In this document: positions 7,048-64,000 of the stretch, piece by piece
How positions within the stretch are numbered: position 1 is the first letter of the stretch
How the letters are laid out: each line of letters starts with the position of its first letter
NCBI GenBank assembly: GCA_011109175.1
Contig: RDEW01000008.1
Location: 1,041,276 to 1,105,275 of the forward strand
Origin: Dicyema japonicum
Taxonomy: Eukaryota; Animalia; Dicyemida
Reading direction: 5' to 3'
Length of the DNA stretch: 64,000 nt
The notes under the pieces: model-generated
Database searches by the model: none
Told to the model about the DNA's origin: nothing
Seen by the model: only the letters and a program-made list of their open reading frames with translations
Translations under genes and position numbers: made by a program

Positions 7048-7049
7048 TT

Positions 7050-34719: not shown

Positions 34720-35380
34720 TGACCTTTCGAAAAAGTCATACTTTTTTTCTCTCCACCTCCACAGTATACAAACGGTCTTGAGACGTAATGACATTTTCTA
34801 TGATGTGAACTAGGCCAGACTCTTCATAGTGTACCACAAAATCATGTTCATTGCTTGACTAGCATAGAGTGTCATAGTAATTGGCATAACGCTATCACTT
34901 TTAATAACCCACCATCATCAACAACATACTTAGCGAACACAAAAGGTTTGAATGTGCCTAGGTGAGTGGGCCTTGTTTTCTCGGTCGTTGTTATGGCGTG
35001 CTTCCTAGCAGACACACTAGACCCAGCTATCAAGGTCTCATGCATTTGCATAAGAATTCGCTTCACCTTGTTGGACTACTCCTAATTGGCTGCCAGCACA
35101 TAGACATAATACTCCACGAATCATAAAATCATTTTATAGTACTTTTTGGCTCAAAATCAACAACACCTATGTAGTAGTTTAGAACCGTAATAGCATACTC
35201 ATTTAATGCTAGGACAACTTCCGTGCATGTCTTACATAATAGCGTTGCTATTCTACTAATGTCTTTAGTTACTTATCGCTTTATCTCATGGACTCAATGG
35301 AAATCTGTAGATAAAAAATCCATTCAGATTCAAAATTGAAATATTGAGGATACTTTTTTATAAAAAATAAATAACCGGAC
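34720..35380 (-). mobile_element. R4/Dong-like RLE element fragment
   Basis: Paralogous to 52865-53700 with additional deletions. Confidence 0.55.
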
Positions 35381-35509
35381 AAATAAAGAAATAATCAAAA
35401 ATTTAAACTAAAAGCACGAGATATTAACTTCCGACCGATTTCAAGCTTAATATTATAAAAATTTAGGATATCCAGTCAAAAGCAGTAAATTTACTAGTAA
35501 AATATACGG

Positions 35510-36698: not shown

Positions 36699-36759
36699 AG
36701 TGTGCTTGAAACTGAAACGAATCATAATGAATTTTAGCAGTCATAACATACACGCAATA

Positions 36760-38480: not shown

Positions 38481-38599
38481 ACGACACTGATCGCCACCAT
38501 AAAAGGTAGACCACATGACGCCAAGCTAACATTATTCCAAGATGGGGATCTTATCTTAAATTAGGTTAATTAATTCATAATTTACATATTAAAAATTTT

Positions 38600-39270
38600 T
38601 TTTAATATAAGTTTTTTTAACAATTAAACAAATGTCAGTTCAGGAAGCCTGCTGCGTGGATTGCAAACGAGTTCCCTCGGAGTATGGCTATTCCAATCTT
38701 TTGTCTTAGCCATAACCCTTCTCGTTGATCTCTTTTCTTTCTGGCAAGCAGTCCTCCGAGTTTTCGCAAGAACTCAGCCGTCATTGGACCAACGGTCCCG
38801 ATGATTCGGTCGCAACAGGAGTAAATCGGTAGCAATCCCCGAGGCAAAATATTTCTTGATTTTTAGGTTCTCCGCAGTCGAAGCAGCTGCTCCAGGTGTC
38901 TGAACCGATTTGAAAATATTCGTGCTTGAGAACGTGTCTACACAAGTTGCGTCCCAGACCAAAGATCCTCCAGACGTGAAGGGGAAAAGGGTCATCCCGT
39001 CAGGTCTCTTCCCATCTCCTCGATTAAGACCCACTAGTTAAACTGTGCTGGGAAGCCTGTAGCCTTCAGAGCTCTGACAATCACATCGTTCAAAGCAGCA
39101 TGACGTGGTCCCCTTCCGGCGCTTCTTCTGCAGGACAGCGGGTGCAATCCTTTCACATCGACTGTTTTCCCGCATCGGCATCGGTGCTCCTGGCAAACGT
39201 CTAGTCCCAGCCGTTGTCTGATTCCAACCTTCAAAGAATCGTCGTCCAATTAGGTCCCGTCCAAAAAGGT
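38600..39270 (-). mobile_element. 5'-truncated CRE-like insertion into the upstream cassette of copy D
   Basis: ORFs 39034-39249, 38774-39034 and 38635-38847 encode CCHC/RLE; flanks rejoin to give the conserved upstream cassette; its 5' junction is tandemly duplicated (~39233-39520). Confidence 0.8.
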
Positions 39271-39523
39271 TAAGTTTTAATAACTTAATTTATTTTTATA
39301 AAATAATTATTAAATTAATTAATTTATTATAATAATTTTTTATAATTAATATTCATGAATAATTAATTATTTAACTCAAAGAATCGTCGTCCAATTACGT
39401 CCTGTCAAAAAGGTTAAGTTTTAATAACTTAATTTATTTTTATAAAGTAATTATTAAATTAATTAATTTTATTATAATAATTTTTTATAATTAATTATTC
39501 ATGAATAATTAATTATTTAACTT

Positions 39524-41140
39524 ATGATCTTTATGTTTGGAAGTTTGTTTGAATTTAATAATTTTGTAGAAATTTTGTTGTTTTTCGGATTAATTCAACT
39601 TGAAATCACTATTGATGAATTGTTATTAAATTCAGTTCCAATGTGGATCATTCGCGTATATGAAAAATATTCTATATTATTTTCTGGAGATATTTACTTA
39701 TCGATTAACATTATGAATTAGTAAGTGAATATCAAAGTAGTAGAATCGAGTTATCAAATTCAACCAGACAGTCAAATTTGTGAAACGAAGAAATAATGAG
39801 TTTCTATCAAATTTCAATTTGAAAATACACTTGTTGAATTTGTCATGAAAAAGAATTCAAGTATTATTAATCTAAAACAGATTTATGTTAATGTTGTCGG
39901 TATCTTGATATTATAGATACCGTATATTTGTGAGTCTTATGCATTAGTTGATCAAACTTTTTTGATTAGCAATTATTATGATTGTCCTATTTTTAAATTG
40001 GACTATCTTGGAATTATTCTTTACATTTTCAATTTAAAACTACAAGTATCTCAAACATCTGGAATTACATCATTTTCTGAAACCTGTTGTATTTATTATA
40101 ATTTTAAGTTATAATTGCAGTAATGACTTGTTATGTGATGAACCTAGTGAACTAATAATCGGTACTTTAAGTTGTTTTATTAATATTTATTTTCTTTTAT
40201 TTTTTATTATTTTTAGATAACACAACAACTACTTCTACGACTAAACCTGAAGGTAAATATCTTCAATTAATGATTAATCAATTCATATACGTAAATTTAG
40301 ATTCACCCACAGAATTGGCCACTACACCTTCTCCCACAAATACAACTGAAAGTAAAATTTCTTCAATTAATGATTAATCAATCATATAATTAAATGTTAG
40401 ATTCACCAACAGATTGACCACCACACTAACTCCCACAAGTACAACTGAAGGTACAATATCTTCAATTAATGATTAATCAATTCATATACTTAAATGTTAG
40501 ATTCAACCACAGAACTGACCACCGAATCTACTCTCACAAACAACTGAAAGTACAATATCATCAATTAATGATTAATCAATTCATATACTTAAATGTTAGA
40601 TTCACTTACAAAACTGACCACCACATCTACTCTCACAATTACAACTGAAGGTACATTTTCTTCAATTAATGATTAATCAATCATATAATTAAATGTTAGA
40701 TTCAACCACAGAATTGACCACCACATCTACTCCCACAAGTACAACTAAAGGTACAATATCTTCAATTAATGATTAATCAATCATATACTTAAATGTTAGA
40801 TTCATTCACAGAATTGGCCGCTACACCTACTCCACAAGTACAAATGTAGGTAAAAAATTTTAATTAACATTTAATCAATTCATACACTTAAATGTTAGAT
40901 TCACCCACAGAATTGGCCACTACAACGACTCCACGACTATAATTGAAAGTAAAATGTTTTAATTCAACATTTAATCAAGTTTATTATTTTAATTTAAGAT
41001 TCGAGCTTAACAAGTTCAACAATAAACTCTAATTGATAGTAAGCATGCATGCCCGAAAATTCAGTACTTCCTCCGTTTCTCGTCCATTGGAATTATCATT
41101 CCTCCTACTTGGATGGATTTTAATTAACATACTAATTTAA
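39524..41140 (+). pseudogene. LAMP-like/mucin family copy D with 8 stalk exons (several 1-2 nt indels)
   Basis: Stalk exons at 40217-40252, 40301-40351, 40401-40450, 40501-40549, 40600-40650, 40700-40750, 40800-40849, 40899-40948; terminal exon 40999-41140 has a 1 nt deletion. Confidence 0.7.
40253..40948 (+). repeat. Minisatellite of seven ~100 bp units, each intron (GT...TTAG, ~48-50 nt) + Thr/Ser exon (~51 nt)
   Basis: Unit e.g. GTACAATATCTTCAATTAATGATTAATCAATTCATATACTTAAATGTTAG / ATTCAACCACAGAATTGACCACCACATCTACTCCCACAAGTACAACTAAAG. Confidence 0.9.
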
Positions 41141-41315
41141 ATTACACTAACAGATATATTTGTTAAATTATTTTCTGAGACTAATTTATTAATTATTTAA
41201 CCCAGGACACATAAAGTAAGTAGTCGGTGATTACCTGTTGTCATATTAGAAATGTAATCTATTTAATGTCTCCTGAATTTGTACTTCATGGTAACAAAGA
41301 AATGAATTGAGAAGA

Positions 41316-41861
41316 GGACTCAAAATCCCAAAAGACACAAAGAAGCAAAGTAATTGGGATTCCATTGTCTGCTCCAAAATTTTAGAAGATTTTAAAAAAA
41401 AAGTAAATCAACTTATTTGTCGTCAGCTTTAAGTGGAGGGAGTAGAGCATGGCTTGGTGCAATACCTTATCCAATCCTCGGGACTTTTTTAGACGACGAT
41501 TATTTGATGATTGGAATCGGACAACGGCTAAGACTAGACGTTTGCCAAAAGCACTGATGCCGATGTGGGAAAACAGTCGATGCGAAAGGATTGCACCCGC
41601 TGTTTAGCAGAAGAAGCGCCGTAAGTGGACCACGTCACGCTGCTCTGAACGATGTGATCGTCATAGCTCTGAAGGCTACAGGCTTCCCAGCACACCTTGA
41701 ACCAGTGGGTCTCGATCGAGGAGATGGAAAGAAACCCTTTCACATCCGGAAGATCTTAGGTCTGGAACGCAACTTGTGTTGACACATTCTCAAGCACGAA
41801 TCTTTTCAAATCAGTTCAAGACACCTGGAGCAGCTGCTTTGACTGCGGAAAACCTAAAAAT
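41316..41861 (+). mobile_element. CRE-like CCHC/RLE fragment, 3'-truncated by junction with Jockey-like element
   Basis: [25 protein letters not shown]; matches 58221-58766. Confidence 0.8.
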
Positions 41862-44500
41862 GACTTTCTCGACTTTTTCATGAGAACATTATCAATCCTT
41901 TTGACGAGAGAAAAACTACGCTTCACACCCGTATAGTAGCTCTGGTAGAATAATCTTTATGAAGATAAACAAGAAGGTCTTCAAGCTTACGAACAACTTG
42001 CTCGTACAGAGAAGCGCTTGTACCGCCTTCTTCCTTCTTCGTCTGATATTTTCCATTAAGGAACCTTCTCCTTCAATAACTACTTTGAGGTAACAGAGTA
42101 AGTTTACTTTTGGAATATCAAGTGAGTAGGGCTGTGTACGGTGTCTCGTAGACGGCTAACTCTCAAGTAGCTGGACTTCTCCGTAGATAGTCTTATCCCT
42201 CTCTTGGAGCACCAATTTTGCACTTGGTCGATGAATGACTTGATTCTTCTTTCCGATAGAGTTTACTTCCAAGACATATCTGTAATTAGAATATCGTCTG
42301 CGTATATCAATAGTTTGGTGTTCGCATCCAGAGGAATTGGAAAGTCTGATAGAAACACGTTGAACAGAAGCGGGCTCAAGGTAGAGCCTGTGGAACGCCC
42401 CTCTTCAGAAAGATATCTTTTGACATACTCGTCCCAACACGTATTTGGGAAGTCCGTCCTGTTAATAAGTTTTTTATCCATATGAAAAGTTTCCTTTGGA
42501 TAGTGACAGCCGCTAGCTTTGATAGCAGTGCATCATGCCACACGCTATCGAATGCCTTGGTCAGGTCCAAACATACTATGTTAACTTGCTTCTTGAATTC
42601 AGACCTCTCAATACCACCGAATGTATGTGGTGGATGCAATCCGTGCAGGATTTCCCAGGTCTGAAGCCACATTGTTCTGCGAAAGGAAACCACTTCTTAT
42701 ATGTGCTCGTTTAGCCTCTTGAAGATAATTCGCTCAACAATCTTGGAAATAGAGCAAATGAGGCTGATCGGCCTATAGTTGAGAGGGTCCCTCCCCGACT
42801 TTCCAGGTTTCAGGATCATTCTAACTATGGAGGTTTTTCAGTTTGGGGACATACACATAATCTATGCTCGCGTTGACTAAATTCTTCAGCACGAGCAGCA
42901 GATCATCTGGGCCTTCCTTGAACATTCTCTTGCTAATATGGTCATGTCCACGGGCGTTAGCTTTGTACACTCTATTGGCAATCACGATGTCCTCTGTCGT
43001 TATCTTCATAACAGTATCTTTGAAATCGTCCGGGAATAAGTAATAAGTTCTTTTGAAGCTCTCAACTCTTCCCTCGGATCAGCTCCGTCGGGTTGACTTC
43101 CTGGATACGGTCTAGTTGCTTCTTAAAGATTTCCAGTACTTCTTCCATAGAATATGATCTACCTTCCAGTTTGTTCAGAGAGATTTTCACATCATTCCAC
43201 TTCTGGCCTGTTATTTTTTTGTAGATCTTCCAGATCGAAGGGTTTTGCTTGTTTCGACCCTCCAACATTGTTCTATTGCCAGTCTTGTTCCCTCTTCAAT
43301 AGCTTTTTTGATTATTTTTAGTTGGCCAGTCAATGTAATCGGTCCATCCAGTCGACACATCATCTGCGTTTGTTCCTCAGTCGGTTTCTTTCTTTAATCA
43401 TAGATAGTGTAGAAGGGAGAAATTAATGCTCTTCTTATAATTGGTATCGGAGAGTCTCCTCCTGGCGTAAAGTGATAAGTATCTCTTCCAGAAAGTTGTC
43501 TATGTTGTCAATATCATTTCGGGAATAAGGTCCCTCCTTCCATTTTTTGAGATTTCAAACATGTATCTTCATAGTGTTCCCAATTTAATCTTGATTGGTC
43601 TGTTCCCTTAGCCTGTGAACACTGACTCGTAGTGTCCGGAGCCAGGTTCAGTGACATCTCTTGAGGGATGCGGTCGCTCCCGATGTCCCACATGATCATC
43701 GGTCTCTCCACATAAGTGTAGAGCAGTGATGACACCAGGAACACTTCAAGCATGTCTCCACCGTAGTGCGAGAAGTGATTCGGCTTCTCCGATGTCAAAA
43801 TCTCGAAGCCAGTCTAGTAACTCAATTTTCTTAGCCTGATTCCATCCTCGTTGGTTCCAAGGCATCCATGTTTAATGTTCTTGGCGTTTAGATCTCCCAC
43901 TAGGACAGACATATCGTTTCCCGCGAAGAATTCTTCAATTTCTGTGGAGCACTTTCTGAGGACCTTTGAATACAATCCTCCAACGTGTATCCAACGGCCA
44001 CAGCATCTCACCTAGACGAAAACAAATTCACAATGTGTATTCATAATTACTTTTGGCTCACGTATCTGTAGAACATCACTGTAGAAAATGTGGTTCCAGT
44101 ACTAGCCTCTGCATATTCGACCCATGGTATTTCTATAGAATTACATCCCCGTAGCATTGTAGTGTTGGTCTTTTTCACCTTAGTCTCGTTGACCACCAGG
44201 ATGTCAATCTTGGTGGCCGACAGAAGTAGTGCCAGGTCATGACGCCTATTCCTCAGTGATCGGGCGTTCACCAGCTATCTTCAGGTTTCTTCTCAATTTT
44301 CTTTTTGGTGAACTGGCTCTCCATGGCCAGGTCCACCATTCTTTTTAAATCCACTCCAAGTTCAGTTCTTCAGTCTATATTATTTCTTCCAGTTCTTTTG
44401 CAAATCTCCTGGTATCTTAGAAGAGGAGCTGGTTCATTCTTGTTAGTCCTTGGGACAATTATTCTTTTTTGGGTAGGAGTTTCACTTTGTTATAACTTAT
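41862..44500 (-). mobile_element. Jockey/I-like LINE ORF2 (APE + RT), frameshifted, both ends truncated
   Basis: NARSLRNRRHDL..ETK, VGDLNAK, NYRPISL, LDLTKAFDSVWH, RGVPQ, YADD motifs. Confidence 0.85.
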
Positions 44501-44524
44501 ATCTGTTCTAATTGTCTGTTCTAA

Positions 44525-44611
44525 ATAAAAAAGTTTTAAGGGTCGATTAAATAATATGGGGGTCAAAAAAAGTCAAGGGGTCGACGAGCAAAAAAAGGTT
44601 GAGAACCCCTG
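44525..44611 (+). mobile_element. hAT right-end remnant
   Basis: GGTTGAGAACCCCTG (44597-44611) preceded by repeated GGGTC(G)A subterminal motifs and followed by CTCTAAAT; absent from paralogue at ~62105. Confidence 0.7.
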
Positions 44612-45124
44612 CTCTAAATCATCCCACCCACAGAGAAGTTGCGTTGGATCCCAGAAGAGGCACAAGGAGAGAATGAGAATTCGGTGTAAGATAATAAGCC
44701 TGGAGGTAATGGAGTCTCGCTGGAGACAATTCTGGCACTTCTTGAAGATGGAATTGGTATTCTTGCTTAACAGAGATATAGAAGACTACTATGTTTGTTT
44801 CCGACGACCCCCCGTTCTTACTGAGAAAAATGACGTCACTTCTAAACACTAACTTTCCAGAAAAAATAGATACCCCTTGGATCTTGGCTACTTCCTATCC
44901 AGAAACTAAACGATTCCCAATTCATGTGTATACGAGTTCGAAAAGTTATTGTCTCATCTAGATCAATGGAGATGACTTCACCGGGAGGACCATACAGTAG
45001 CTTGTTTTTTTAGCCAATAATTTAAGCCAAATACTCTACTTCAGTGTGTTTTAACAATTCTTGAAAGTAATTCAAATCTTGATGTTTGATATTTTTCGGT
45101 ATTAAGAATTTGAAGATGACTAAT

Positions 45125-45197
45125 GCCTCCGTGGCGCAACGGTTAGCGCGTGTGGCTGTTAACTGCGAGGTTGCCGGTTCGAATCCGGCCGGAGGCG
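45125..45197 (+). tRNA. trnN: tRNA-Asn (anticodon GTT)
   Basis: 73 nt cloverleaf: acceptor GCCTCCG/CGGAGGC+G, D-arm GCGC, loop CTGTTAA, T-arm GCCGG-TTCGAAT-CCGGC, T-run just downstream; anticodon stem is G-U rich. Confidence 0.9.
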
Positions 45198-45559
45198 AAT
45201 TTTTATCTAAACAAAGTTACTTTTTTTGCAAATTGCCAAATTATAAAAAAATATACCGTATTCCTTATACTAAAATATTTATAAACATCTATTTTTTCCT
45301 GTTTTCTTTCTAGGCAAAAATTAATTTTTTAAAAAAAACATATTCTTAGAAATTATACTTCATTGCTAAACTAAGTAAAATCATTCGGGTCACTCAACTT
45401 AGATTCAATAAAATAATATTTTTTTATTTCAGGATGGCTTTAAGCGACACTCTGTGTTTACAGATATATTCACAATTTCACTAGTAAAGTTATACATAAA
45501 CAATTTTTTTTTAAATCAAAATAAATTTTTCTACTTGCTGCTCTCAGAATCCAAGACAA

Positions 45560-46170
45560 ATTAAGTTAATGAAAGCCATATTAACCATGTCAAGATAAAT
45601 ATTCATCCAATGGGCCCCCAACTACTTCACTCATCGTCCTCTAATGGATTTCTTTGTGGTCAAATAGTGACGATGATCTATTCATTTATTTCATTTGCAC
45701 TTTCATCTTCATAAAAGACGCAGTTACTTCTTCCTCTTTTTTGACTTATAGCTTTCCAAAATAATAATCCCTTCATTGCCGAGAAGGGTCTAAGTGTTTG
45801 GCTGTACTTCATAAACAAGATATAGTCAGACGTTCGAGATGTACAGTAGGACATGTGTGGTTGATAACTCCTTGAAACATCGCCATAAATTTATCATCTG
45901 CATAAACTTGAACAGTATGTATGGATCATTGAAGTATGGAATATCGGATAAAAACAAATTTAATAATAAAGTGAACAGTGGATGTCTTTGAGGAACATTG
46001 TTCGGTAAGAAGCGAGATATTGATAACGTACTCTCCGGCGTCGCACGGAAAAATTGTTATCTTAGTATTATATCGGATTCGAATGTCTTTTGAATATCAC
46101 TACAAATCCGAGATGTGTCACAGTAAAGCGACCCGGTTTGTAGTCGTATTGGAAGGAAGATGACAAAAGA
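45560..46170 (-). mobile_element. Highly degenerate non-LTR RT fragment
   Basis: Paralogue at 63080-63690 gives VDIQKTF, NGVPQ, LNLFLSDIP, VQVYADD. Confidence 0.5.
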
Positions 46171-49169
46171 TCTGGGAAAATAATTTTTAAAACAAGCTTT
46201 GTGCATGTGAGAAAGACCGGGCTAGAGAATTAAGAGTAATAGGATTTATTTTTTTTAATTTAAAAATATTATTATTAATATTTAATCGATCTTAAATATA
46301 AAGTAAATGAACGTTTATATTTCTTTATGTGTTTTGGTGGTGCACTGAGATCTCCATTTTAATTAGTTAAAATGGTCGAAAAGTGCAATATTATTCTACA
46401 CTTAACGTTGCTACTATCTTAGTAGTTAGTATAGTGTACTACATTCATTTTTAAACTTGTATATTGCCGATGATACTCGATATCCAGTAGAATCCATGAA
46501 TCCACCATTTGTGATTTATACACTGAAATTTCTCACATATGCCCAAGAATATTCATATTCTCCTTTATTGTTCAACCTTTCTCTGGTTGTTTTTAGCTGC
46601 TTTATTAGGTCGTTGTTTAGGGTGTATCCCAAAAATATTTCGTCGGGATGTGTTCTTTAATTACCATCTTCGAAAGTGATTCAAGCACACGTGACATTTT
46701 GAATTGAAATCGAATTTCCCAGCAATTGTATGATAACGTGTCAGATCACTGTGTAGATATGACATCCTAACGACAGCAGTTATTTCTTCAATTTGGAAAT
46801 GTTCGCCAAATCGACACATTAAATTCGAATCCAGAGATCACTATATTCCGTCCATCTGTATGAGAAATTCGACTTTCTGTGTAGACACAAGCAGAGACAC
46901 TTCTGACAGAGGTTAGGTTTTTCGATGAACACAGGATGGAAATAGCATGAGCGATAGGGGGAACCAGGTACATATAACTAGAACGGTTATCATTATCTAA
47001 GGGGTTGACTGGATGGCTATTCCCCTCAGGATGGCTAGCTAGATTCGCTCAAAATAACCAGCGTCGCTGACGGGGATCTCCTGTTCATGCGAAATCAGAT
47101 TTCCTAGACGACTCAAGAATTTTAGCATCACAGGAGCAATGGAACTTGACATTCAAAAGTGTGCAAGACTAACAAAAAATATGACCGTATACTCTCAGTT
47201 TCATATCAGCCGATTGAATTATTTATTTAACTTTTCAAGGATAAGTTGAGGTACTAACCTTTTTTGCACTAAAACCACACATCTGGTTTTAGATAGACTT
47301 TTGTAATATTGGAAGAACTGTTTCTGCAAAAATTGAAAGTAATGTATCTCTCTTGCTTCGTCTACTCTCCATATCTTCGATTCTTAGAATATTGTGTGGA
47401 AAGTAGAAGTCAAGAAAATTATTTTTTTTATTTTCAAGTAAGTACTACTTCACATGAAAATACTAACCATCCAACAAGATTTCCAACATTGAACTCGACA
47501 GGCCAGCCCAGCATGAAAAATAATTTTTTCAAAAACCAATCCTGTCTTCTGAGTTAAATCTGAGTTGCCCAAGAAGACTTTTAACTATACCGTGAAAGTT
47601 CAATTGTGAGGATTTCAAAAGACAGTTACATGTCTGGTTGGGGGAGATGACTTTTAAAGGTATCAAATCGAAATTCGTGGAAATTGGTAATGTTAACAAA
47701 GGTTCCTTGGTTTTCTGAGGCATTGTTAAAACCCATGAACGGGTTTTCCCTCAATCGCCTGACGTGATCTGAAAATTGTAGTCATGATAGATCCGCTACT
47801 TTCCGCAAAACTATGTAAAATCTGTAAACAACTTCGAAGACAAAGATTTGGATATCGAATCGATCCTGATGCCTTTTTAGGGATATCATCTAAACATGGC
47901 ATGCTACCAATTGACTCTTCAAGTCTGATCATAAAATACTCACAAATATAGTAAGGCAGTCGAGTTCTGCATTCGATACGTGATTATTACTGAAAAAAAT
48001 CTCAGAAAGTGATATATGTCAACTGTAAAAATGAGAAAGAACAGTTCTCCGATTAACAAGGTACTCATCAAAGGGGGTTCATTCATAGTCGTTTGTGAAG
48101 AAATGACAAAAAATCGTTGGGTATTCGACTTTTGGAAATTTCTAGTGCCTGGACGCCATATTAAGAGGATCTCGTTTTTCCATACTCCCCTTGAGGGGTT
48201 TCAAGTGGCGGATATGATGCATGGAAAATGCATCTCATTCTGACCGCTGGAACTGGGATTACTTTGTTAGTTGAGTACTCTCTTTCTCTTTAACCAGTGA
48301 TCCTGAGTCAATAAATATAGAATGTCTTGTTTCAATATTTTTAGAAATATTATGATGCTTTGTTAGAAATCAATGAGGCAAATAATTCCATATGTGGGGA
48401 ATCTTGGAGTCGTTTAGCTACAATAGCGCTAGAGATAAAAGACAACGATCCTTGTTTCCAAATAATTCCAGAGTATTACCCCCATCTACTTAGAGTGCGC
48501 ATCAAATTTGATGGAAATAAATGGCATTGTTGTACAATTGGAGAGAGCGAAGAGCTCAATTCCCCAGATTCAACAAAAATTAATTTACCACCTGTCCATT
48601 CAAGTGAAGGAAACCGGTGGTGACTTTTTCTCTCAGTTTTGTATAAATAGGCGTTGAGACCCACGTGATGACCGCAGCGGAGGCGCGAGAGTTTACCCGA
48701 ATTTTAAGAGGAAGGCAATTATTCTGTCGGGGTGCGATTTTTGAATTAATTTTTTTTTAAATTGTTATATATTTATAATTAAATTTCAAATAATTAAATA
48801 ATGTAGCATGCAGCTTTCTGGTGTGACCTGTTAAAAGTAAGAAAATATGTAGACAACTATTTATCTTTTGTTTTCATTTAAAATATCTACTTAAAACCAT
48901 GTGTTTTGCAAATGTGGTGTGAATTTTTTCTAACAAAGCGATTTAGCTATCTCGCTTATTGGAACACACACAACGCACGCATTCGGAATCACTAGGAAAA
49001 GTTATTGAATGTTTTTTAAATTTAAAGCAAAACTATGGCAAAGTGATAAACATAACGTCATTAATAAATACCTGAAGACCCACAAATTATTCATGTCTTT
49101 TGTATTCACATAAAGATGGAGAAATTATCGCCAATGCTGGTTTTTTATCTTTTTTTAATTTATAAGACA

Positions 49170-52200: not shown

Positions 52201-52864
52201 ATTTATTTTTTAAATAATTATTTTTTAAATAATTTTTATTATATATCTTGTCAAGAAGATTCTAACTCGCTCGCTGAATTCTCTACTAACCTGGACGCGG
52301 CCATGCTCGTGAGACCTTCAGCTTTCCCACGTTCTCTCAGTGGTGCCTGGACGATGCTGTATGGCTGAATTCTTTTGAAGATCCCTAGTGTCATCTAACC
52401 AACATTACCGTGCCTGTTTGTTGTCAGGGGCATCTTCCGATTTTCCATGAGAATTTAAAACAATTCACCTTTTTATTATTATTTACTACAAAATTTAATT
52501 TATTTGTTGATTGACTATAACATCTTTGCAGTATTGTCTTTTTGACTTTTCCGTTTTGAAGAGCGAGCTTAGAAACACTCACTGTTTAGGTAAGATATTT
52601 AAAAAGAACTTCTTTGTTTATGTCTTCGTGAACAATTTGAAGAACTGGATTGTAATTTACCTATGTGGAAAAAGAAAAGAAGTATTTCACGTTCTACAAA
52701 ATCATCACTAAGTTTTGCCTAACGTGCTCCTATTAGGATCTCTTCTGTCACTTATCTTGTTCAACTTTTTTCTGTACGATATTCCACCTATATATTTTAC
52801 GATATACTGAATGATATAATCATCAGGAGACCTGTGTGGTCACATTAATGCTGATAGCTTAGAT

Positions 52865-53700
52865 AATTTATTAGACATTTCGAAAAAGTCATACTTTTTT
52901 TCTCTCCACCTCCACATTATACAAACGGTCTTGAGACGTAATGCCATCTTTCATGATAAAAACTTGGCCAGAATCCTTATCGTGTACCACAATATCAGGT
53001 TCATAGTGAGTTGCATAACGCCTTCACATTTACTAGCCCACCATCATCAACACCATACTTAGCAGACAAATAAGGTCTATAGTGCCTAGGTGGGTTGCCC
53101 GTGTTTTCTCGGTCGTTATTATGGCGTGCTTCCTAGCAGCCACACTTGACCCTCCTAACAGCGTCAAATGCATTTGCATAAGAATACGCTCACGTTTTTA
53201 TAATACTCCACACAGTCTACGGCCGAATTTATCACGGAATAAATTTAGTCTCTCTTTACTGGCTGCCAGCATATGGACATGGTTCTCTCTGAGTACTCCA
53301 CGGATCATAACATCCATCTCATCATACTCCTTTTGCTCAAACTCCACAACACCTATGTAATAGTTTAGCAGCAAGACAGAATACTCATTTAATGCTAGGA
53401 ACAAATTCCTTGCATTTAGAGACGTCTTACATAATAACGCTGCTCTTTTACAAATGCCTTCAGTAATTTGTCGCTTTGTCTCAGGTGTTATAAGGGACTT
53501 TGGAGTTTCGGTAACACCCAGATACTTATATCCTTCGTGTTCCTCTAGGACTTTTCGTAACACCAGATACTTATATCCTTCGTGTTCCTCTTTAGTTACT
53601 TGTCGATTTATCTCAGGGACTCAATTGAAATCTGTCGATAAAAAATCCATTCAGATTCAAAATTGAAATATTGAGGATACTTTTTTATTAAAAAATAAAT
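52865..53700 (-). mobile_element. R4/Dong-like RLE non-LTR retrotransposon fragment (best-preserved copy)
   Basis: GYKYLGV...LCKTSLNARNLFLALNEYS..LNYYIGVV...KERLNLFRDKFGRRL, then EPDIVVHDK...GITSQDRLYNVEVERKKYDF; ~47 bp local duplication of the YKYLG segment at ~53510-53590. Confidence 0.75.
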
Positions 53701-53837
53701 AACTGAACAAATAAAAAAATAATCAAAAATTTGAACTAAAAGCACGAGATATTAACTTCCGACCAATTTCAAGCTAAATATTATAAAAATTTAGGATATC
53801 CATTCAAAAGCAGTAAATTTACTGGTAAAATATACGG

Positions 53838-55253
53838 CTTTAAAAGTTTTCCTAAGTGGGCAGCGATAATTTCCGCCACTTCCCTCTGGTCCACAATTTG
53901 CGTTCTTTTGTCATCTTTTATAATTATCGGTTGATGGGGTCTTTCCCTTCATCTGTTTCACAGCCTCGTAGAATCTAGCGTTGTCTTTGAGAGATTCTAT
54001 CTTCTTAATCTGGTCCAGTGCTCTATTTCTGTTTTGCTGGCGCATAGTTTTTCTTATTTTTGCTTTGATAGTTATTCTTTCTAGCCTCAATTTTGATTTT
54101 ACGTTCGAATCGTCAGTATTTTGATATAGCATCCATATGGTCTTCTGTTTATTGGCAAGGTCCTTCACCGTGTACATGTCATTGTGCGATGGGATTTTCT
54201 CATTTTCTTTCATTAGATGAAGATTGGCTTTTTTATGTATTGATTTCTTTACAAAATCCCAGGATTTTCCGAGCGGCAAATCTGTAGGCATGTATTCTAG
54301 TTCTGCATCCAGATATTCTCTGAATGCTAGGGCCCCTTCTGATTGACTGATTAAGGATTCCAAGTTATAACGTCTATAGCTGGGTTCTGTGGTTTCAATG
54401 TGCTTCCATTTCGTTCTTTGTAGTACCATAAATCTCTTAAGAGAAAGTCTAGCGAAAACCATTTTGTGGTCGCTGTCGCTAATTGATCCACCATAAGCTC
54501 GTGCATAAGTATAATCCCTCGATCTTTTTGCCTGCATATGATATAGTCGATCTGGTTGTATATATTTATCACTCACACTTCGAGATTTGTTCTGTGTCCC
54601 GACCACGTAGATTTATGTCTGGCTGGATGCATGAAGGTGTATTGCATAAAAATAGGTTGTTCATTTGACAGAAGTTAGCTAGTAGAGTTCCCGGGGAATT
54701 TCTTTTCTCCCTACCATGCCTTCCCAAGAATGTCTCATCGGTCGTAACCTGGGTGCCATTTTTCGCATTTAGGTTTCCTGCAATCATTACTAATGTCGAG
54801 AAAGCATACTTGGAAAAGACTGGTGTAAAAGTCATCAATCTCCCCAGGGTTTTTATTAAGCCATCCACTGTGAAGGGCGTAAACGTTTATTATAGTTAGA
54901 TATTTCTTCGACGGGTTGAGGTCATCCAGTTTCAATTGCAACACCCCGATTCTATCATTCACACTGTAATATCGGCAGACTCTTTTGGATAGATCATTCC
55001 TGACGGCAAATCCTAGCCCATAGAGCTTGTTTCTACCTGGAAGGAAGATTAGTCGAAAGTTCTCATGTTGTTCTTTGATCCCGTTGATTAGTTTAATCTC
55101 CTGAAGGCAGGCGATTGAAATCATGTATTTTGTTAGATCCTCGACCAGTTCCTTCCGGTTCCGAACGCTAGAAAGTCCCCTGACGTTAAACGTGAAAAAG
55201 GAGAGTCCAATAGCTTGATACTGTGTTTTCCAGACATTGAGTTCAAGAGCCAC
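53838..55253 (-). mobile_element. RTE-like LINE 5' part (ORF start, APE endonuclease, linker); RT deleted
   Basis: TFNVRGLSS...IACLQEIK, LGFAV, NDRI, YNQIDYII, SDHKMV motifs across ORFs 54735-55253, 54569-54868 and 53911-54606. Confidence 0.85.
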
Positions 55254-55403
55254 GTTAAATTAGGTTAATTAATTCATAATTTACATATAAAACTTATTTT
55301 AATAACTTAATTTATTTTTATAAGTTAAGTTATTAAATTAATTAATTTTATTATAATAATTTTTTAAAATTACTTATTCATAAATAATTAATTATTTTAC
55401 TTA

Positions 55404-56533
55404 ATGATCTTTATGATTGGAGGTTTGTTTGAATTTAATAAGTTTGTAGAAATTGTGTTGTTTTTCGGTTTAATTAAACTTGAAATCACTATTGATAAAG
55501 TGTCAAATAGTCAAATTCCAATGTGGATCATTAGTGTAAATGACGAATTTTCTATTTTATTTTCTGGAGAGATTAACGTGAGGATTACAGATAATGGAAT
55601 GGTAAATGAATATGATAGTAGTAGGATCGAGTTGTCAATTTCAACGAGACAGTTGTCGGTTATGAGAATCTAGGAAATAATGAATTCTATATCAATTTAC
55701 AAGTTGGAATTACACTTGTTAGTTTTAAATTGAAAATGGATGATAATCTTAATTATTTAAATCTAATTTATGTTATGGTTGTCGGTATCTTGACATTATA
55801 GATACGGGGAATTGGTAGTTCTTCTATTAATATTAATGAAATATTTTTGATTAGAAATTATTATTATTGTCATAATTTAAAGATAGAATTTCCTCCATTT
55901 ATTTTACACATTCTACTTTAAACTACAAGTATCTCGAACACCTGGAATTACATCATTTTCTGAAACCTGTTGTATTTATTATAATTTTAAGTTGATAATT
56001 GCAGTAATGATCTGTTAAATAATGAACCTATTGAACCAATAATCGGTCCTTTAAGTTGTTTTATTAATATTTATCATCTTTTATTTTTTTATTTATTTTT
56101 AGGACACACTACAGCTACTTCCACTACTACAAGTGAAGGTAAATATTTTAATTTCATGTTTATAAATTAATGCAATTAAATAATATTCTTATTCATAAAA
56201 TTGATAACTACAGCTACTCCCACAAATACAGCTGAAGGTAAAATATCTTCAATTTATGATTAATCAATTCATATAATTAAATGTTAGATTCACCCACAGA
56301 ATTTGCCACTACAACTACTTCCACTACTACAATTGAAGGTAAAATATTTTAATTCCCTATTTAATCAATTTATATCATTTTTATTTTAAGATCCGAGCAT
56401 AACAAGTTCAACAATTAACACTAATTTGATAGTAAGCATGCATGCCCGAAAATTCAGTACTTCATCCGTTTCTCGTCCAGTGGAAGTAACATTCTTCCTA
56501 CTTGGATGGATTTTAGTTAACATACTAATTTAA
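55404..56533 (+). CDS. LAMP-like domain + mucin stalk + GPI-type tail glycoprotein, copy E (complete; one 2 nt frameshift, real or sequencing error)
   Basis: Exons 55404-55422, 55450-55601, 55625-55777, 55802-55968 (2 nt short near 55905-55925), 55992-56045, 56103-56138, 56288-56338, 56391-56533; introns 1-4 are 27/23/24/23 nt; a 39 nt stalk exon near 56199-56237 has lost its AG. Confidence 0.6.
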
Positions 56534-56964
56534 TTTAAACTAACAGATTTCTTTGTTAATTTTATTTTCGGAGATTAATTTAATAATTATTTAACCCAGG
56601 ACACACAAAGAAAGATATCGGTGATTAATAATTAATTATGTTTATCCAAGTACAAAGTTGTAATAGGATAGAGACATGAACCTCTATACAAACAACTAGA
56701 TCCGAGATCACAGTGAGAGACATTCTCCATGAGATTAACTGTCGTCATATGAGAAATGTAATCTATTTGATGTCTTCCTGAATTTGGACTTCATGGTAAC
56801 AAAGTAATGAATTGAGAAGAGAAGTAAGTAAGATGAATTGAAAGCTTGATGAACTGTTATTAGGATGACATCATACTGACTAATAAAACTTTTCAAAGAT
56901 TTGGTTGATTCTTAAGCTGCCCCGTTGGAACTTTGTGATCATATGACTTAATTTGGTTGTTTCG

Positions 56965-58766
56965 GAGATCAATTATATCAATGGTTTTGAAAAACGAGTG
57001 ATATGGTGTGATCAATGAAAATCTCAGATGGAAATTAAAGAACGAAAAGAAGACGAAGTCTAGAAACAAAGCCAGTAGAGACAACTCAGGTATGTCTCTT
57101 ATGTGGACATTCGAAACTCAGGAAATTTAGAATTAATTTCACGCAATATGAACCATTCGTCCATTTGGGCTCGTAAAAATCAGTAAAGCTTGCGCCGAGA
57201 CGCTGTCGGGTTATCTGTCCATTCTTGTATTGGAAAAAAGCTCCCCAGGCTGGAAAAAATAGCTCAGCCAAACTTTACACTGACACATACTGAGCAAACT
57301 ATCTTGCGAACCTCCGGAAAGTCAGGAAGATCCCAGTAAAAATCCGTAAAGGAGTAAGAATTGCAGAAGCAACGTGTCAGATGCCATTGATCACGGACTG
57401 TAATGAGGTCGAAACTAGAGGAGCATACACCAAATATGTCCCCAACAAACTAAAGGAAAGAGTAAAACTGAAACTTCTGGAGGGCGACGACGTGCGGGCT
57501 GCTTTACGGGTTATCACGTCCGATGACACAGTATTGTCTTGTACTCCTGAGTTCTTGAAAACCTTAATACTGAAAAACCTTAATACTGACTATGAAAAGT
57601 TTTAGAATCCTGAATGAACCCGCTAAATCTCTGGTACCTCGATGATGCCACAATTGGAGGATCATTCAAGGAAACATACAATTCATTACGTGAAACGTTA
57701 TCCGGTTTAAAACACTTGGGCTTGGACTTCAATGTTAACAAATCAGAGCTAATGAATGTCTCATATCCGAACACCGACATTCTATCTATCAAAAAGTCCT
57801 TTAACGAAATGCTTCCTGGAATCCCGACTGTGCCAGTTGATAAATTATATTTCCTCGGATCAGCGAAAAACTCAAGAACTATCTACTTTGCAAAAATGAA
57901 GAATTACACGGTTCGCGAAAAGATTGTCATGTCTCGACTCTCACACATCCTTCTCCCAGATGAGAAACAACATCGGACTACCCAAGCTTTTATATCTACT
58001 ATGATGTTCACTTTGCTACGAACAATACGACAGTCTACTTTCGATAGACAAATTTCTCAAATAAAATGTTGAATCACCTAATTAACGTCCGCTTCGACGA
58101 ACTTAGTTAGAAGCAATGTAAGCTTCTTTCTGGAATTGATGTTGTTGGTCTAAGATCGGTGCTGGAAACCGCGTACCTGGCATATCTATCGTCTCTCTCA
58201 AGCTGTACTGGAACGGGTCCGGACTCAAAATCCCCAAAGACACAATGAAGCAAAGTAATTGGGATTCCATTGTCTGCTCCAAAATTTTAAAAGATTTTAA
58301 AAAAAAAGCAAATCAACTTATTTGTTGTCAGCTTTAAGTGGAGGGAGTAAAGCATGGCTTGGTGCAATACCTTATCCAATCCTCGGGACTTTTTTGGACG
58401 ACGATTATTTGAGGATTGGAATCGGACAACGGCTAAGACTAGACGTTTGCCAAAAGCACTGATGCCGATCTGGGAAAACAGTCGATGCGAAAGGATTGCA
58501 CCCGCTGTTTAGCAGAAGAAGCGCCGTAAGTGGACCACGTCATGCTGCTCTGAACGATGTGATCGTCATAGCTCTGAAGGCTACAGGCTTCCCAGCATAC
58601 CTTGAACCAGTGGGTCTCGTTCGAGAAGATGGAAAGAAACCTTTTCACATCCGGAAGATCCTTGGTCTGGAACGCAACTTGTGTTGACAGATTCTCAAGC
58701 ACGAATCTTTTCAAATTAGTTCAAGACACCTGGAGCAGCTGCTTTGACCGCGGAAAACCTAAAAAT
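56965..58766 (+). mobile_element. CRE-like retrotransposon, long degenerate copy (PHD remnant, RT, CCHC/RLE)
   Basis: VCLLCG...RKF...FVHLG, RKIPVKIRKGVRIAEA, LNLWYLDDATIGG, RHAALND; internal deletions. Confidence 0.75.
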
Positions 58767-61700
58767 GACTTTCCCGACTTTTCCATGAAGAACATTATCA
58801 ATCCCTTTGACGAGAGAAAAACTACGCTTCACACCCGTATAGTAGCTCTGGTAGAATAATCTTTATGAAGATAAACAAGAAGGTCTTCAAGCTTACGAAC
58901 AACTGCTCGTACAGAGAAGCGCTTGTAGCGCCTTCTTCCTTCTTCGTCTGATATTTTCCATTAAGGAACCTTCTCCTTCAATAACTATCCTGAGGTAACG
59001 GAGTAAGTTTACTTTTGGAATATCAAGTGAGTAGGGCTGCGTACGGTGTCTCGTAGACGGTTAACTCTCAAGTAGCTGGACTTCTCCGTAGAGAGTCTTA
59101 TCCCTCTCTTGGAGCACCAATTTTGCACTTGGTCGATGAATGACTTGATTCTTCTTTCCGATAGAGTTTACTTCCAAGACATATCTGTAATTAGAATATC
59201 GTCTGCGTATATCAATAGTTTGGTGTTCGCATCCAGCGGAATTGGAAAGTCTGATAGAAACACATTGAACAGAAGCGGGCTCAAGGTAGAGTCCTGTGGA
59301 ACGCCCCTCTTCAGAAAGATATCTTTTGACATATTCGTCCCAACACGTATTTGGGAAGTCCGTCCTGTTAATAAGTTTTTTATCCATATGAAAAGTTTCC
59401 TTTGGATAGTAGCAGCCGCTAGCCTTGATAGCAGAGCTTCATGCCACACGCTATCGAATGCCTTGGTCAGGTCCAAACATACTATGTTAACTTGCTTCTT
59501 GAATTCAGACCTCTCAATACCACCGAATGTATGTGGTGGATGCAATCCGTGCAGGATTTCCCAGGTCTGAAGCCACATTGTTCTGCGAGAAGGAAAACCA
59601 TGTACTCGTTTAGCCTCTTGAAGATAATTCGCTCAACAATCTTGGAAATAGAGCAAATGAGGCTGATCGGCCTATAGTTGAGAGGGTCCCTCCCCGACTT
59701 TCCAGGTTTCAGGATCATTCTAACTATGTAGGTTTTTCAGTTTTTGGGGACATAGACATAATCTATGCTCGCGTTGACTAAATTCTTCAGCACGAGCAGC
59801 AGATCATCTAGGCCTTCCTTGAACATTCTCTTGCTAATATGGTCATGTCCACGGGCGTTAGCTTTGTACACTCTATTGGCAATCACTCTGTCGTTATCTT
59901 CATCACAGTATTTTGAAATCGTCGGGAATAAGTAATAAGTTCTTTTGAAGCTCTCAACTCTTCCCTCGGGATCAGCCCCGTCGGGTTGACTTCCTGGATA
60001 CGGTCTAGTTGCTTCTTAAAGATTTCCAGTACTTCTTCCATAGAATATGATCTACCTTCCGGTTTGTTCAGAGAGATTTTCACATCATTCCTCTTCTGGC
60101 CTGTTATTCTTTTGTAGATCTTCCTGAACGAAGGGTCTTTGATGTTTAGTTTGCTTGTTTCGACCCTCCAACATTGTTCTATTGCCAGTCTTGTTCCCTC
60201 TTCAATAGCTTTTTTGATTATTTTTAGTTGACCAGTCAATGTAATTCGGTCCATCCAGTCGACACATCTTCTGAGTTTGTTCCTCAGTCGGTATCTTTCT
60301 TTAATCATAGATAGTGTAGAAGAAGGAAATTAATGCTCTTCTTATAATTGGTATCGGAGAGTCTCCTCCTGGCGTAAAGTGATAAGTATCTCTCCATCAC
60401 AGTTGAAAGTTCTCTGTCTATGTTGTCAATATCATTTCGGGAATAAGGTCCCTCCTTCCATTTTTTGAGATTTCTAAACATGTATCTTCATAGTGTTCCC
60501 AATTTAATCTTGATTGGTCGTAGCCTGTGAACACTGACTCCGTAGTGTCCGGAGCCAGGTTCAGTGACATCTCTTGAGGGATGCGGTCGCTCCCGATGTC
60601 CCACATGATATCAGTCTCTCCACATAAGTGTAGAGCATTGATGACACCAGGAACACTTCAAGCATGTCTCCACCGTAGTGCGAGAAGTGATTCGGCTTCT
60701 CCGATGTCAAAATCTAGAAGCCAGTCTAGTAACTCAATTTTCTTAGCCTGATTCCATCCTCGTTGGTTCCCAGGCATCCATGTTTAATGTTCTTGGCGTT
60801 TAGATCTCCCACTAGGACAGACATATCGTTTCCCGCGAAGAATTCTTCAATTTCTGTGGAGCACTTTCTGAGTTCCTTTGAATACAATCCTCCAACGTGT
60901 ATCCAACGGCCACAGCATCGCACCTCGACGGAAACAAATTCACAATGTGTATTCATAATTATTATTGCTCACGTATCTGTAGAACATCATGTGGTTCCAG
61001 TACCAGCCTCTACACATTCGACCCATGGTATTTCTACAGGAATTACATCCCCGTAGCATTGTAGTGTTGTCTTTTTTCACCTTAGTCTCGTTGACCACCA
61101 GGATGTCAATCTTGGTGGCCGACAGAAGTAGTGCCAGGTCATGACGCCTATTCCTCAGTGATCGGGCGTTCAGCAGCACTATCTTCAGGTTTCTTCTCAA
61201 TTTTCTTTTGGTGAAACTGGCTCTCCATGGCCAAGTCCACCATTCTTTTTAAATCCACTCCAAGTATGCCGCTTAGTTCATTCAGTCTTGATATTATTTC
61301 TTCCAGTTCTTTTGCAAATCTCCTGGTATCTTGAAGAGGAGATGGTTCATTCTTGTTAGTCCTTGGACAATTATTCTTTTTTGGGTAGGAGTTTCACTTT
61401 GTTATAACTTATAACATTCATCTGTTTCGGTTCCGTATTGTTGTTGATTCGGGGACTTCGCTTTCGCCTGGCCTCCACAAGCACAGGGAATCCTCCATAT
61501 TTTGCATCGTGTTTTGTTGATCCGCAGTTAACACAATTAAGGTTCAAGACCCGGATCCGCATTGCACCTGGAGGTGTCATGCTCTCCCGCGCAACGAAAG
61601 CATTTCTTCTTTCCCGTGCACTGGTATGCAAAGTGACCGACATGCTGACAGTTGTAACATATTGGCGGTCCTCTTCTCATCCATTCACAGGAGATCTTGT

Positions 61701-62500
61701 TCGTTCCAATGTAGAAGCCACAGCGTATTAGTGATGTGGCCTCGATTTAACCGAGGCCTTCTCCATTGGCATCGGCTGCGATCCTCTGGACATTCGGGTA
61801 ACTTTGTAGTTGAGGGAACCATCTCCTGAAGGTAGTCCAAGAGGTCGTCCTCATTCGCCTTGAAAGGCAGGTTCCTGAATACAATCACAGACGGTTTTGT
61901 TAAGAGTGTTCTGAATTGGTGTTTGTCGGGACCAAAAAGACAGATCTCATTTACGGCCTCTATATAAGTGGCCATGTAGAAGTTGAACTGAAAATCCAGT
62001 CGGAAGGAGCCCGGTCCTCTGTGGCTCATTCTCATAGATCCGTAGTGGTCATACACAGGCAGGATATGTCTTAAGTGAAAGATGTAAATCACCACTCTCT
62101 AATTTCTATTTTCTAAATCAACCCACCCACAGAGAAATTGCGTTGGATCCCAGAAGGGGCACAAGGAGAGAATGAGAATTCGGTGTAAGCTAATGAGCCT
62201 GGAGGTAATGGAGTCTCGCTGGAGACTATTCTGGCACTTCCTGAAGATGGAATTGGTATTCCTGCCTAACAGAGATATAGAAGACTACTATGTTTGCTTC
62301 CGACGACCCCCCGTTCTTACTGAGAAAATGATGTCACTTCTAAATATTAACTTTCCAGAAAAAATACCTGCCTCTTGGATCTTGGCTACTATTTCCTATC
62401 CAGAAACTAACGATTCCCAATTCATGTGTATACGAGTTCGAAAAGTTATTGTCTCACTTAGATCAATGGAGATGACTTCACCTGAGGACCATACAGTAGC
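58767..62500 (-). mobile_element. Jockey/I-like LINE: gag-like ORF1 with zinc knuckles + ORF2 (APE, RT); frameshifted, 3'-truncated
   Basis: CYNCQHVGHFAYQC, CFRCAGEH..C, CVNCGSTKH knuckles (~61500-61670); ORF2 motifs as in 41862-44500; 5' boundary (~62100-62500) uncertain. Confidence 0.8.
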
Positions 62501-62622
62501 TTGTTTTTTTAGCCAATAATTTAAGCAAATACTCTACTTCAGTGTGTTTTAACAATTCTTGAAAGTAATTCAAATCTTGATGTATGATATTTTTCGGTAT
62601 TAAGAATTTGAAGATGACTAAT

Positions 62623-62695
62623 GCCTCCGTGGCGCAACGGTTAGCGCGTGTGGCTGTTAACTGCGAGGTTGCTGTTTCGAATCCGGCCGGAGGCG
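62623..62695 (+). tRNA. trnN: tRNA-Asn(GTT) duplicate with two T-stem substitutions (possible pseudogene)
   Basis: Identical to 45125-45197 except T-stem GCTGT vs GCCGG, giving a G-U pair and a U-C mismatch next to the TTC loop. Confidence 0.7.
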
Positions 62696-63079
62696 AATTT
62701 TTATCTAAACAAAGTTACTTTTTTTGCAAATTGCCAAATTATAAAAAAATATACCGTATTCCTTATACTAAAATATTTATAAACATCTATTTTTTCCTGT
62801 TTTCTTTCTACGCAAAAATTAATTTTTTAAAAAGAGCCTATTCTTAGAAAATATACTTCATTGCTAAACTAAGTAAAATCATTCGGGTCACTCAACTTAG
62901 ATTCAATAAAATAATATTTTTTTATTTCAGGATGGCTTTAAGCGACACTCTGTGTTTACAGATATATTCACAATTTCACTAGTAAAGTTATACATGAACA
63001 ATTTTTTTTTAAATCAAAATAAATTTTTCTACTTGCTGCTCTCAGAATCCAAGACAAATTAAGTTACTGAAAGCCATAT

Positions 63080-63690
63080 TAACCATGTCAAGATAAATAT
63101 TCATCAAATGGGCCCCAACTACTTCACTCATCGTCCTCTAATGGATTTTTTGTGGTCAAATAGTGAGGATGATCCGTTCATTTATTTCATTTGCACTTTC
63201 ATTTTCATAAAAGACGCAGTTACTTCCTCCTCTTTTTTGACTTATAGCTTTCCAAAATAATAATCCCTTCATTGCCGAGAAGCGTCTAAGTGTTTGGCTT
63301 TACTTCATAAACAAGATATAGTCCGACGTTAGAGATGTACAGTAGGACATGTGTGGTTAATAACTCCTTGAAACATCGCTATAAATTTATCATCTGCATA
63401 AACTTGAACAGTATGTATGGATCATTGAAGAATGGAATATCGGATAAAAACAAATTTAATAATGAATGGGTACAGTGGATGTCTTTGAGGTACACCGTTC
63501 GGTAAGAAACGAGATATTGATACCGTAGTCTCCTGCGTCGCGCGGAAAGAAATTGTTGTCTTTGTATTATATTCGGATTCGAATGTCTTTTGAATATCCA
63601 CGACAAATCCGAGATGTGTCACAGTAAAGCGACCCGGTTTGTAGTCGTATTGGAAGGAAGATGACAAAAGATTGGGAAAATAATTTTTAA
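63080..63690 (-). mobile_element. Highly degenerate non-LTR RT fragment (paralogue of 45560-46170)
   Basis: VDIQKTF, NGVPQ, VQVYADD motifs in shifting frames. Confidence 0.5.
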
Positions 63691-64000
63691 AACAAGCTTT
63701 GTGCATGTGAGAAAGACCGGCCAGAGAATTAAGAGTAATAGGATTTATTTTTTTAAATTTAAAAATATTATTATTAATATTTAACAGATCTTAAAAATAA
63801 AATAAATGAACATGTCTATTTCTTTATGTGTGTTTTTGTGGTGCACTGTGATCTCCATTTTAGTTAGTTAAAATGGTCGAAAAGTGCAATATTATTCTAC
63901 ACTTAACATTGCTACTATTTTAGTAGTTAGTACAGTGTACTACAGTATTTGTTAACATGTATATTGCTGATAATACTAGATATCCTATAGAATCCCATGA

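Follow-up and report, generated by a model that had tools for sequence, protein, structure and literature searches.

The 64,000-nucleotide (nt) window analysed here, part of contig RDEW01000008.1 of Dicyema japonicum, is AT-rich (~30-36% GC), highly repetitive and interrupted by four runs of N. Within it lie five homologous units, found by blastn with positions 55301-56650 as the query against the window; a tblastn search of the window with the spliced model of the unit at 55404 found no copy beyond these five. All five share an ATG, placed by blastn and by the translations at 13923, 31343, 39524 and 55404 on the forward strand and at 25424 on the reverse strand, and they are referred to below as c13, c31, c39, c55 and c25, respectively. 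We consider it probable, at roughly 0.55, that they belong to a lineage-specific birth-and-death family of secreted mucin-like glycoproteins, most likely ending in a glycosylphosphatidylinositol (GPI) anchor.

Copies and gene structure

The most legible copy is c55, whose exons, introns and flanks are listed in Table 1 together with the other copies and the neighbouring features. The micro-introns of 27, 23, 30 and 23 nt keep their lengths and their GT..AG ends invariant across the copies, and the insertions and deletions (indels) lie in the exons. Intron 1 is in frame and lacks a stop codon, so that its splicing would be optional for the frame, while intron 2 must be removed for the frame to continue. 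Base composition follows the same division, with a GC content of 30.5% in exons and 17.6% in introns, and of 39-46% in the exons of the stalk compared with 12-16% in its introns, the two of which that separate the c55 stalk micro-exons measure 75 and 50 nt. These features make splicing of the micro-introns a plausible prediction. For most animals, a length of 20-30 nt would be abnormal. In D. japonicum and in myxobolid myxozoans, introns shorter than 30 nt are typical (PMC13644364). The GC content, the gaps and the load of long interspersed nuclear elements (LINEs) in the window likewise agree with the published D. japonicum assembly (PMC6736024).

The copies differ in their state of preservation. 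Exon 3 has 70-71% nucleotide identity and ~39% amino acid identity between c55 and the other copies. Beyond the lesions in Table 1, c39 carries a stalk of eight units, at least four of which are frame-broken (38-, 49-, 38- and 50-nt exons), and a 1-nt deletion in its last exon; c31 has lost the donor of intron 5, and a 135-nt deletion truncates its last exon. Most of the copies in the window are dead (c13, c31 and c39), and c55 and c25 are doubtful.

Several partial copies and rearrangements were seen at the 5' side of the family. The homology of the c55 5' flank to the other copies starts at 55255/55297, and a LINE fragment cuts off this flank upstream at 55254. In c25, ~125 nt are inserted at 25450-25575 on the reverse strand, some 50 nt before the ATG, within a 5' flank that is otherwise conserved and has an extreme AT content. 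An inverted 5' fragment, consisting of 5' flank and first exon, stands head to head with c13, and a tandem partial copy of the family 5' flank and first exon lies upstream of c39 with a 42-nt insert, which recurs in the sequencing reads as a loose end before 55297.

Table 1. Positions of the family copies, of the c55 gene model and of neighbouring features in the window
Feature	Position	Strand	Size and remarks
Copy c13	13623-14547	+	Pseudogene; stop in exon 2, indels in exons 3 and 4, truncated at 14547
Copy c25	26183-23445	-	Exons 1-3 and last exon open; middle in N run 24093-24978
Copy c31	30711-32821	+	Pseudogene; -1/+1 indels plus two stops in exon 3
Copy c39	39419-41316	+	Pseudogene; deletions of 1, 4 and 1 nt in exons 2, 3 and 5
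Copy c55	55255-56982	+	Exons 1-3 and exon 5 to end open; exon 4 frame broken
c55 5' flank, presumed promoter and 5' untranslated region (UTR)	55255-55403	+	7% GC; 6.2% divergent from c39
Exon 1	55404-55422	+	19 nt; no Met between an in-frame TAA and this ATG
Candidate intron 1	55423-55449	+	27 nt, GTTTGT..TGTAG; 89-100% identity among copies, length invariant
Exon 2	55450-55601	+	152 nt; remainder of signal-like segment, then start of variable domain
Intron 2	55602-55624	+	23 nt, GTAAAT..AGTAG; GT..AG and length kept in 5/5 copies
Exon 3	55625-55771	+	147 nt; most divergent exon; carries the NET sequon
Intron 3	55772-55801	+	30 nt, kept in 5/5 copies; terminal TAG is an in-frame stop if retained
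Exon 4	55802-55968	+	167 nt (169 nt in c31 and c39); NYYYC ... LQVS ... SFSE
Intron 4	55969-55991	+	23 nt; kept in 4/4 copies that reach it
Exon 5	55992-56045	+	54 nt, DNCSNDLLNNEPIEPII; ends in phase 1
Intron 5	56046-56102	+	57 nt, AT-rich, pyrimidine tract; 93-96% identical to c31 and c39; donor lost in c31
Stalk micro-exon 1	56103-56138	+	36 nt, phase 1-1, Thr-rich
Stalk micro-exon 2	56214-56237	+	24 nt, phase 1-1, Thr-rich
Stalk micro-exon 3	56288-56338	+	51 nt, phase 1-1, Thr-rich
Last intron	56339-56390	+	52 nt; last base of acceptor AG at 56390
Last exon	56391-56533	+	143 nt; Ser/Thr-rich part followed by STSS-VSRPVE-VTFFLLGWILVNILI and TAA; 7% divergent from c39
3' flank, presumed 3' UTR	56534-56982	+	Conserved; 79-89% identical to c25 and c31
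Inverted 5' fragment	14555-14759		Head to head with c13
Tandem partial 5' copy	39275-39382		Upstream of c39; 42-nt insert
LINE fragment	53589-55253	-	Weak Exo_endo_phos match; abuts the c55 promoter region
LINE fragment, second copy	35262-36708		95% identical; upstream of c39
Decayed non-LTR retrotransposon	41316-44300	-	Just downstream of c39; broken frames
Decayed non-LTR retrotransposon	58221-61413		Just downstream of c55; broken frames
tRNA-Asn(GTT)	45124-45198		Inside duplicated segment (Rfam)
tRNA-Asn(GTT), second copy	62622-62696		Inside duplicated segment (Rfam); two T-arm changes

The predicted protein

Read with an X at its single frame break, the spliced c55 model encodes 263 amino acids (aa). 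Hydropathy identifies hydrophobic stretches only at residues 1-20 and 249-263, and the first of these, which could serve for entry into the endoplasmic reticulum, lacks a positively charged n-region. It is followed by a domain of ~160 aa in which I, N, F, Y and V abound and which contains two Cys (in NYYYC and NCSND, at residues 129 and 165) and the sequons NET and NCS. In the other copies, this C-terminal region has two or three Cys, and exons 2-3 have none. The stalk that follows is ~55 aa long with 49% Ser+Thr, is built of 17-aa units of the type DSPTELATTPTPTNTTE and forms Ser/Thr(/Pro)-rich tandem repeats of the mucin kind. Its micro-exons of 24, 36 and 51 nt make up a run of symmetric exons, each a multiple of 3 and no longer than 81 nt, between ordinary end exons, as in micro-exon genes (MEGs).

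The c55 protein ends in ...KFSTSSVSRPVEVTFFLLGWILVNILI, closing with ...STSSVSRPVEVTFFLLGWILVNILI and a stop, and nothing lies beyond the hydrophobic stretch. As a rule of thumb, the omega and omega+2 positions of a GPI signal are occupied by small residues, 5-10 aa of polar spacer follow, and the protein closes with 12-20 uncharged hydrophobic aa. The C-terminus conforms to this rule, with S-T-S, the 7-aa polar spacer SVSRPVE, the 15-aa uncharged hydrophobic VTFFLLGWILVNILI and a stop, an arrangement that is kept in c25, c39 and c55; the terminal stop is conserved in c25, c31, c39 and c55. Fifteen residues are also short for a membrane-spanning helix. A hidden exon for a transmembrane (TM) helix and tail was considered and rejected: c55 alone has a 31-nt GT..AG segment by which the stop could be skipped, and A replaces the G in the remaining copies.

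Part of what an earlier note on this DNA had claimed agrees with these results. The homologous units begin at exactly the five ATG positions it gave, and the conserved GT-AG micro-introns it predicted are present at identical lengths in every copy. The architecture it described, with a hydrophobic N-terminus, the sequons NET and NCS, Cys in NYYYC and CSND, a Thr/Ser stalk and a tailless end, can be followed in spliced c55. A multicopy family with a Thr-rich micro-exon stalk likewise fits the sequence, as does the proposed GPI signal, given the small residues, the spacer, the 15-aa end and the stop in four copies.

Divergence, sequencing reads and surrounding sequence

c39 and c55 lie within a collinear duplication of ~12 kb (34288-46499 versus 52440-64000), and the unequal rates of divergence between them are the strongest sign that the unit is a gene. 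Over more than 6 kb of collinear flanks the two copies diverge by 3.1-4.3%, and across introns 1 to 5 by 7.0% (11/158), whereas the domain exons 2 to 5 differ at 23.5% of positions (121/514; Fisher p=1e-6 against the introns) and the gene overall at 20%. The same excess of exon over intron divergence was found between c55 and each of c31, c13 and c25, and between c31 and c39, and is absent in the closest pairs. Within exons, differences are ordered by codon position as 1 > 2 > 3, and the NG86 omega of mature-domain comparisons is 1.2-1.6. In c55 and c25, exons 1 to 3 are open and free of indels over 106 codons despite 73 substitutions (P ~0.03 under simulated neutral change); at this base composition, chance would leave 106 codons open with a probability of ~4e-4.

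Uniform neutral decay is excluded by this pattern, and the contrast in rate between exons, introns and flanks indicates that the family is under selection or subject to patchy conversion, and is not a neutral repeat. By analogy, the pattern resembles that of fast-evolving secreted families, in which the mature exons are hypervariable and signal, introns and tail are conserved. However, since synonymous divergence (0.17-0.28) is as high as non-synonymous divergence and far above the intron rate, positive selection is neither proven nor the sole reading. Another reading that fits is patchy conversion, with divergent paralogs as the source, together with constraint on the introns.

Among sequencing runs, the locus occurs in X1-X4 only, in which depth scales with run size, as would be the case for DNA. 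A 703-nt contig from the locus-holding runs spans 55446-56145 with its introns retained. This contig neither supports nor refutes splicing: it is uninformative if the runs are DNA and would count against the gene model if they were RNA. In runs X1-X3, a contig with 98% identity has an additional TA behind 55902, which makes exon 4 169 nt long and open, so that an intact version of exon 4 is present in the sequenced material.

Word depth in X1-X3 is 181 for the copy-specific contig, 7754 for the conserved 5' end (55403-55453), 7000-9000 for the last exon and 3' UTR, and 139,000-180,000 for the stalk unit (56219-56320). Relative to the copy-specific contig, the conserved ends are thus ~40-fold and the stalk unit ~770-1000-fold enriched, which suggests, if the runs are DNA, a family of tens of copies with ~20 stalk units each. 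The 100-nt stalk unit, comprising an intron and the start of an exon, is among the most abundant short repeats in the X1-X3 material. The 135-nt deletion of the c31 type (joint 56371 to 56507; c31 32380-32440) removes the acceptor of the last exon and the omega region, and its joint occurs in all three of these runs at several-fold the unique depth; the dead c31-type subfamily is itself amplified.

The window also contains tRNA genes and transposon remains. The Rfam search returned tRNAs only, among them the two tRNA-Asn(GTT) genes of Table 1, the second of which has changed from GCCGG to GCTGT in its T-arm and scores 52 rather than 62 bits. The endonuclease open reading frame of the LINE fragment near c55 has no relative sharing words in a collection of 5.8 billion proteins. 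The decayed retrotransposon without long terminal repeats (non-LTR) that follows both c39 and c55 retains reverse transcriptase motifs (..FDSVWHDALL.. and ..YADDILI..) and an endonuclease motif.

Interpretation and comparison with known families

In the explanation that we favour, the hydrophobic N-terminus would direct the protein into the endoplasmic reticulum, and the C-terminal signal would be cut at a Ser of STSS and exchanged for GPI. The Thr/Ser stalk, presumably O-glycosylated, would raise the ~160-aa variable and probably beta-rich domain above the membrane, and its length could shift by duplication or loss of whole 100-nt units of exon plus intron. The exons of the variable domain diverge at a much higher rate than introns, signal, tail and flanks do, owing either to diversifying selection or to patchy conversion among the paralogs.

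The earlier note had gone further and taken the domain for a LAMP-derived fold. A diverged LAMP luminal domain (a beta-prism, PF01299), set on a mucin stalk with a GPI anchor after loss of its TM helix and tail, would account for one feature that is indeed visible in the sequence: Y-x-C is followed, after ~36 residues that include L-Q-V and S-F-S, by C-x-x-D, an order and spacing that we take to resemble the membrane-proximal LAMP domain and use as a lead, not a test. The domain is, moreover, beta-prone, with N-glycosylation sequons and an adjoining Ser/Thr-rich region, as in LAMPs and CD68. These motifs are, however, short and low in information, and the searches lend them no support. Ten exon pieces, the motif-bearing exon among them, matched no Pfam family at E<=10, PF01299 included; profiles of exons 1-2, 3 and 4, compared with every PDB sequence, matched no chain at E<=10 even though LAMP structures have been solved; and exon 4 has no LAMP cluster as a neighbour in the ESM Atlas. 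LAMP domains have four Cys in two disulfide loops, whereas the c55 domain, with two Cys, allows one disulfide, and where LAMPs have a TM helix and a short GYxxPhi tail, four copies of this family have a 15-aa hydrophobic end followed by TAA. We consider the LAMP origin improbable, and the evidence at present does not justify labelling the family as LAMP; judged by searches of its exon pieces, the domain does not appear LAMP-like and the family appears to be an orphan. An elaborated version, in which a dicyemid or myxobolid would possess tens of GPI-anchored glycocalyx genes whose hypervariable head is a single-disulfide LAMP-type beta-prism under diversifying selection at the host interface, on a stalk whose length is tuned by slippage of units of exon plus intron, is highly improbable; if true, a lysosomal fold would have been redeployed as a variable surface coat.

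Even less credence can be given to the view that the unit is a satellite or mobile element, in which open frames and GT..AG pairs arose by chance in AT-rich DNA. In its favour, LINE and other repeats form a mosaic across the window, the points of 5' truncation differ among copies, and read depth is very high over parts of the unit. Yet no terminal inverted or long direct repeats flank the unit, and no transposase, reverse transcriptase or other Pfam domain lies within it, for which reasons a transposon was rejected; the copies are instead embedded in larger collinear duplications, and chance hardly accounts for the 106-codon frame, the difference in GC between exons and introns, or the invariant intron lengths. 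A dead or never-expressed relic, in which once-coding copies decay while being spread by segmental duplication across a region rich in repeats, the 100-nt stalk is effectively a minisatellite and no functional coat exists, is unlikely but ranks first among the alternatives. It would explain the lesion or gap in each of the five copies, an omega near 1, the retained introns and lack of spliced reads, the satellite-like depth (~1000-fold) of the stalk unit, the multicopy state of the truncated c31-type form in the reads, and ESM features that are not protein-like. Neutral decay, however, cannot yield exons three to six times more divergent than adjacent introns and flanks, and this alternative is also at odds with the 106 codons kept open in c55 and c25, with the near-identical allele or paralog that has an open exon 4, and with the splice sites and intron lengths preserved in every copy.

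A number of observations nevertheless weigh against a functional family of secreted mucin-like glycoproteins. None of the five copies in the window is demonstrably intact: c55, c31, c39 and c13 carry lesions, c25 has its N gap, and in c55 itself a 2-nt deletion near 55902 disrupts the frame of exon 4. For c55, removal of the introns, as in the earlier note, is not enough to give a continuous frame. The DNA-like runs X1-X4 contain no GT-AG joints, the joints that were seen being non-GT-AG repeat or deletion variants. The ESM features of exon 4 resemble those of non-genes, with a low recognition score near 1200, and the profile of exons 1-2 found no true relative among 1.84 billion representative proteins; its sole match, P0001, a 4357-aa bacterial repeat adhesin, was rejected as spurious, arising from a low-complexity 'DFNNF' stretch. 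With omega near 1, no purifying selection acts on the protein, and the high synonymous divergence given above adds to this: relaxed constraint on the protein with constrained introns would fit equally. The signal peptide and the GPI signal were assessed by eye and by hydropathy only. To speak of an expanded cell-surface coat, as the earlier note did, is an overstatement, in that most copies in the window are pseudogenes and expression of the family is hypothetical.

The Trypanosoma cruzi mucins, the Schistosoma mansoni polymorphic mucins (SmPoMuc) and MEGs, and certain venom genes are established examples of systems to which this family may be likened. It resembles parasite mucin families and schistosome micro-exon and polymorphic-mucin genes in kind, without any relation in sequence. 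The GPI-anchored TcMUC/TcSMUG mucins of T. cruzi are likewise a large family with many pseudogenes that forms a parasite surface glycocalyx, and there, too, a conserved signal peptide and GPI signal enclose a hypervariable region and Thr-rich repeats (PMC6817596, PMC8591177). Unlike here, the T. cruzi genes are intronless; in D. japonicum a globular-looking domain of ~160 aa precedes the micro-exon stalk, and both anchor and surface location are putative. In SmPoMuc and the MEGs, a short symmetric exon is duplicated in tandem with its intron, which determines the number of repeats; the secreted products evolve fast, and the genes form clusters that include pseudogenes and whose members recombine. 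The SmPoMuc repeats are, however, 27-nt exons on the N-terminal side of a protein that is secreted and not GPI-anchored, and MEGs lack a comparable globular domain. Neither the Pfam search with exon pieces nor the exons 1-2 profile search of 1.84 billion representatives detected sequence similarity to SmPoMuc or MEGs, so that the match is one of architecture only.

The LAMP family (LAMP1/2, DC-LAMP, CD68, LAMP5) would share with the predicted protein a glycosylated, beta-rich luminal-type domain beside a Ser/Thr/Pro-rich region, in addition to the motif order discussed above; in CD68 the order is the reverse, the domain here being N-terminal to the mucin part. In the pattern of divergence, a parallel is offered by the snake-venom phospholipase A2 (PLA2) and conotoxin genes, whose mature-protein exons evolve several-fold faster than introns, signal peptide and UTRs, with synonymous sites above the intron rate. 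Those genes belong to another protein class and another biology, and patchy conversion between paralogs is equally possible in the present family.

To our knowledge, almost nothing is known of the host interface of these highly reduced parasites. If expressed, the genes presented here would constitute the first variable surface-coat family to be described from an animal lineage whose introns measure 20-30 nt. They would also offer a clean natural example of how duplicating exon plus intron in tandem determines protein length, and of exons that outpace the introns lying between them several-fold in divergence. Such genes are easily missed, hidden as they are by repeat masking and by tiny introns, and none was present in the public protein collections searched. 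Gene counts may, for this reason, understate the surface repertoire of such genomes.
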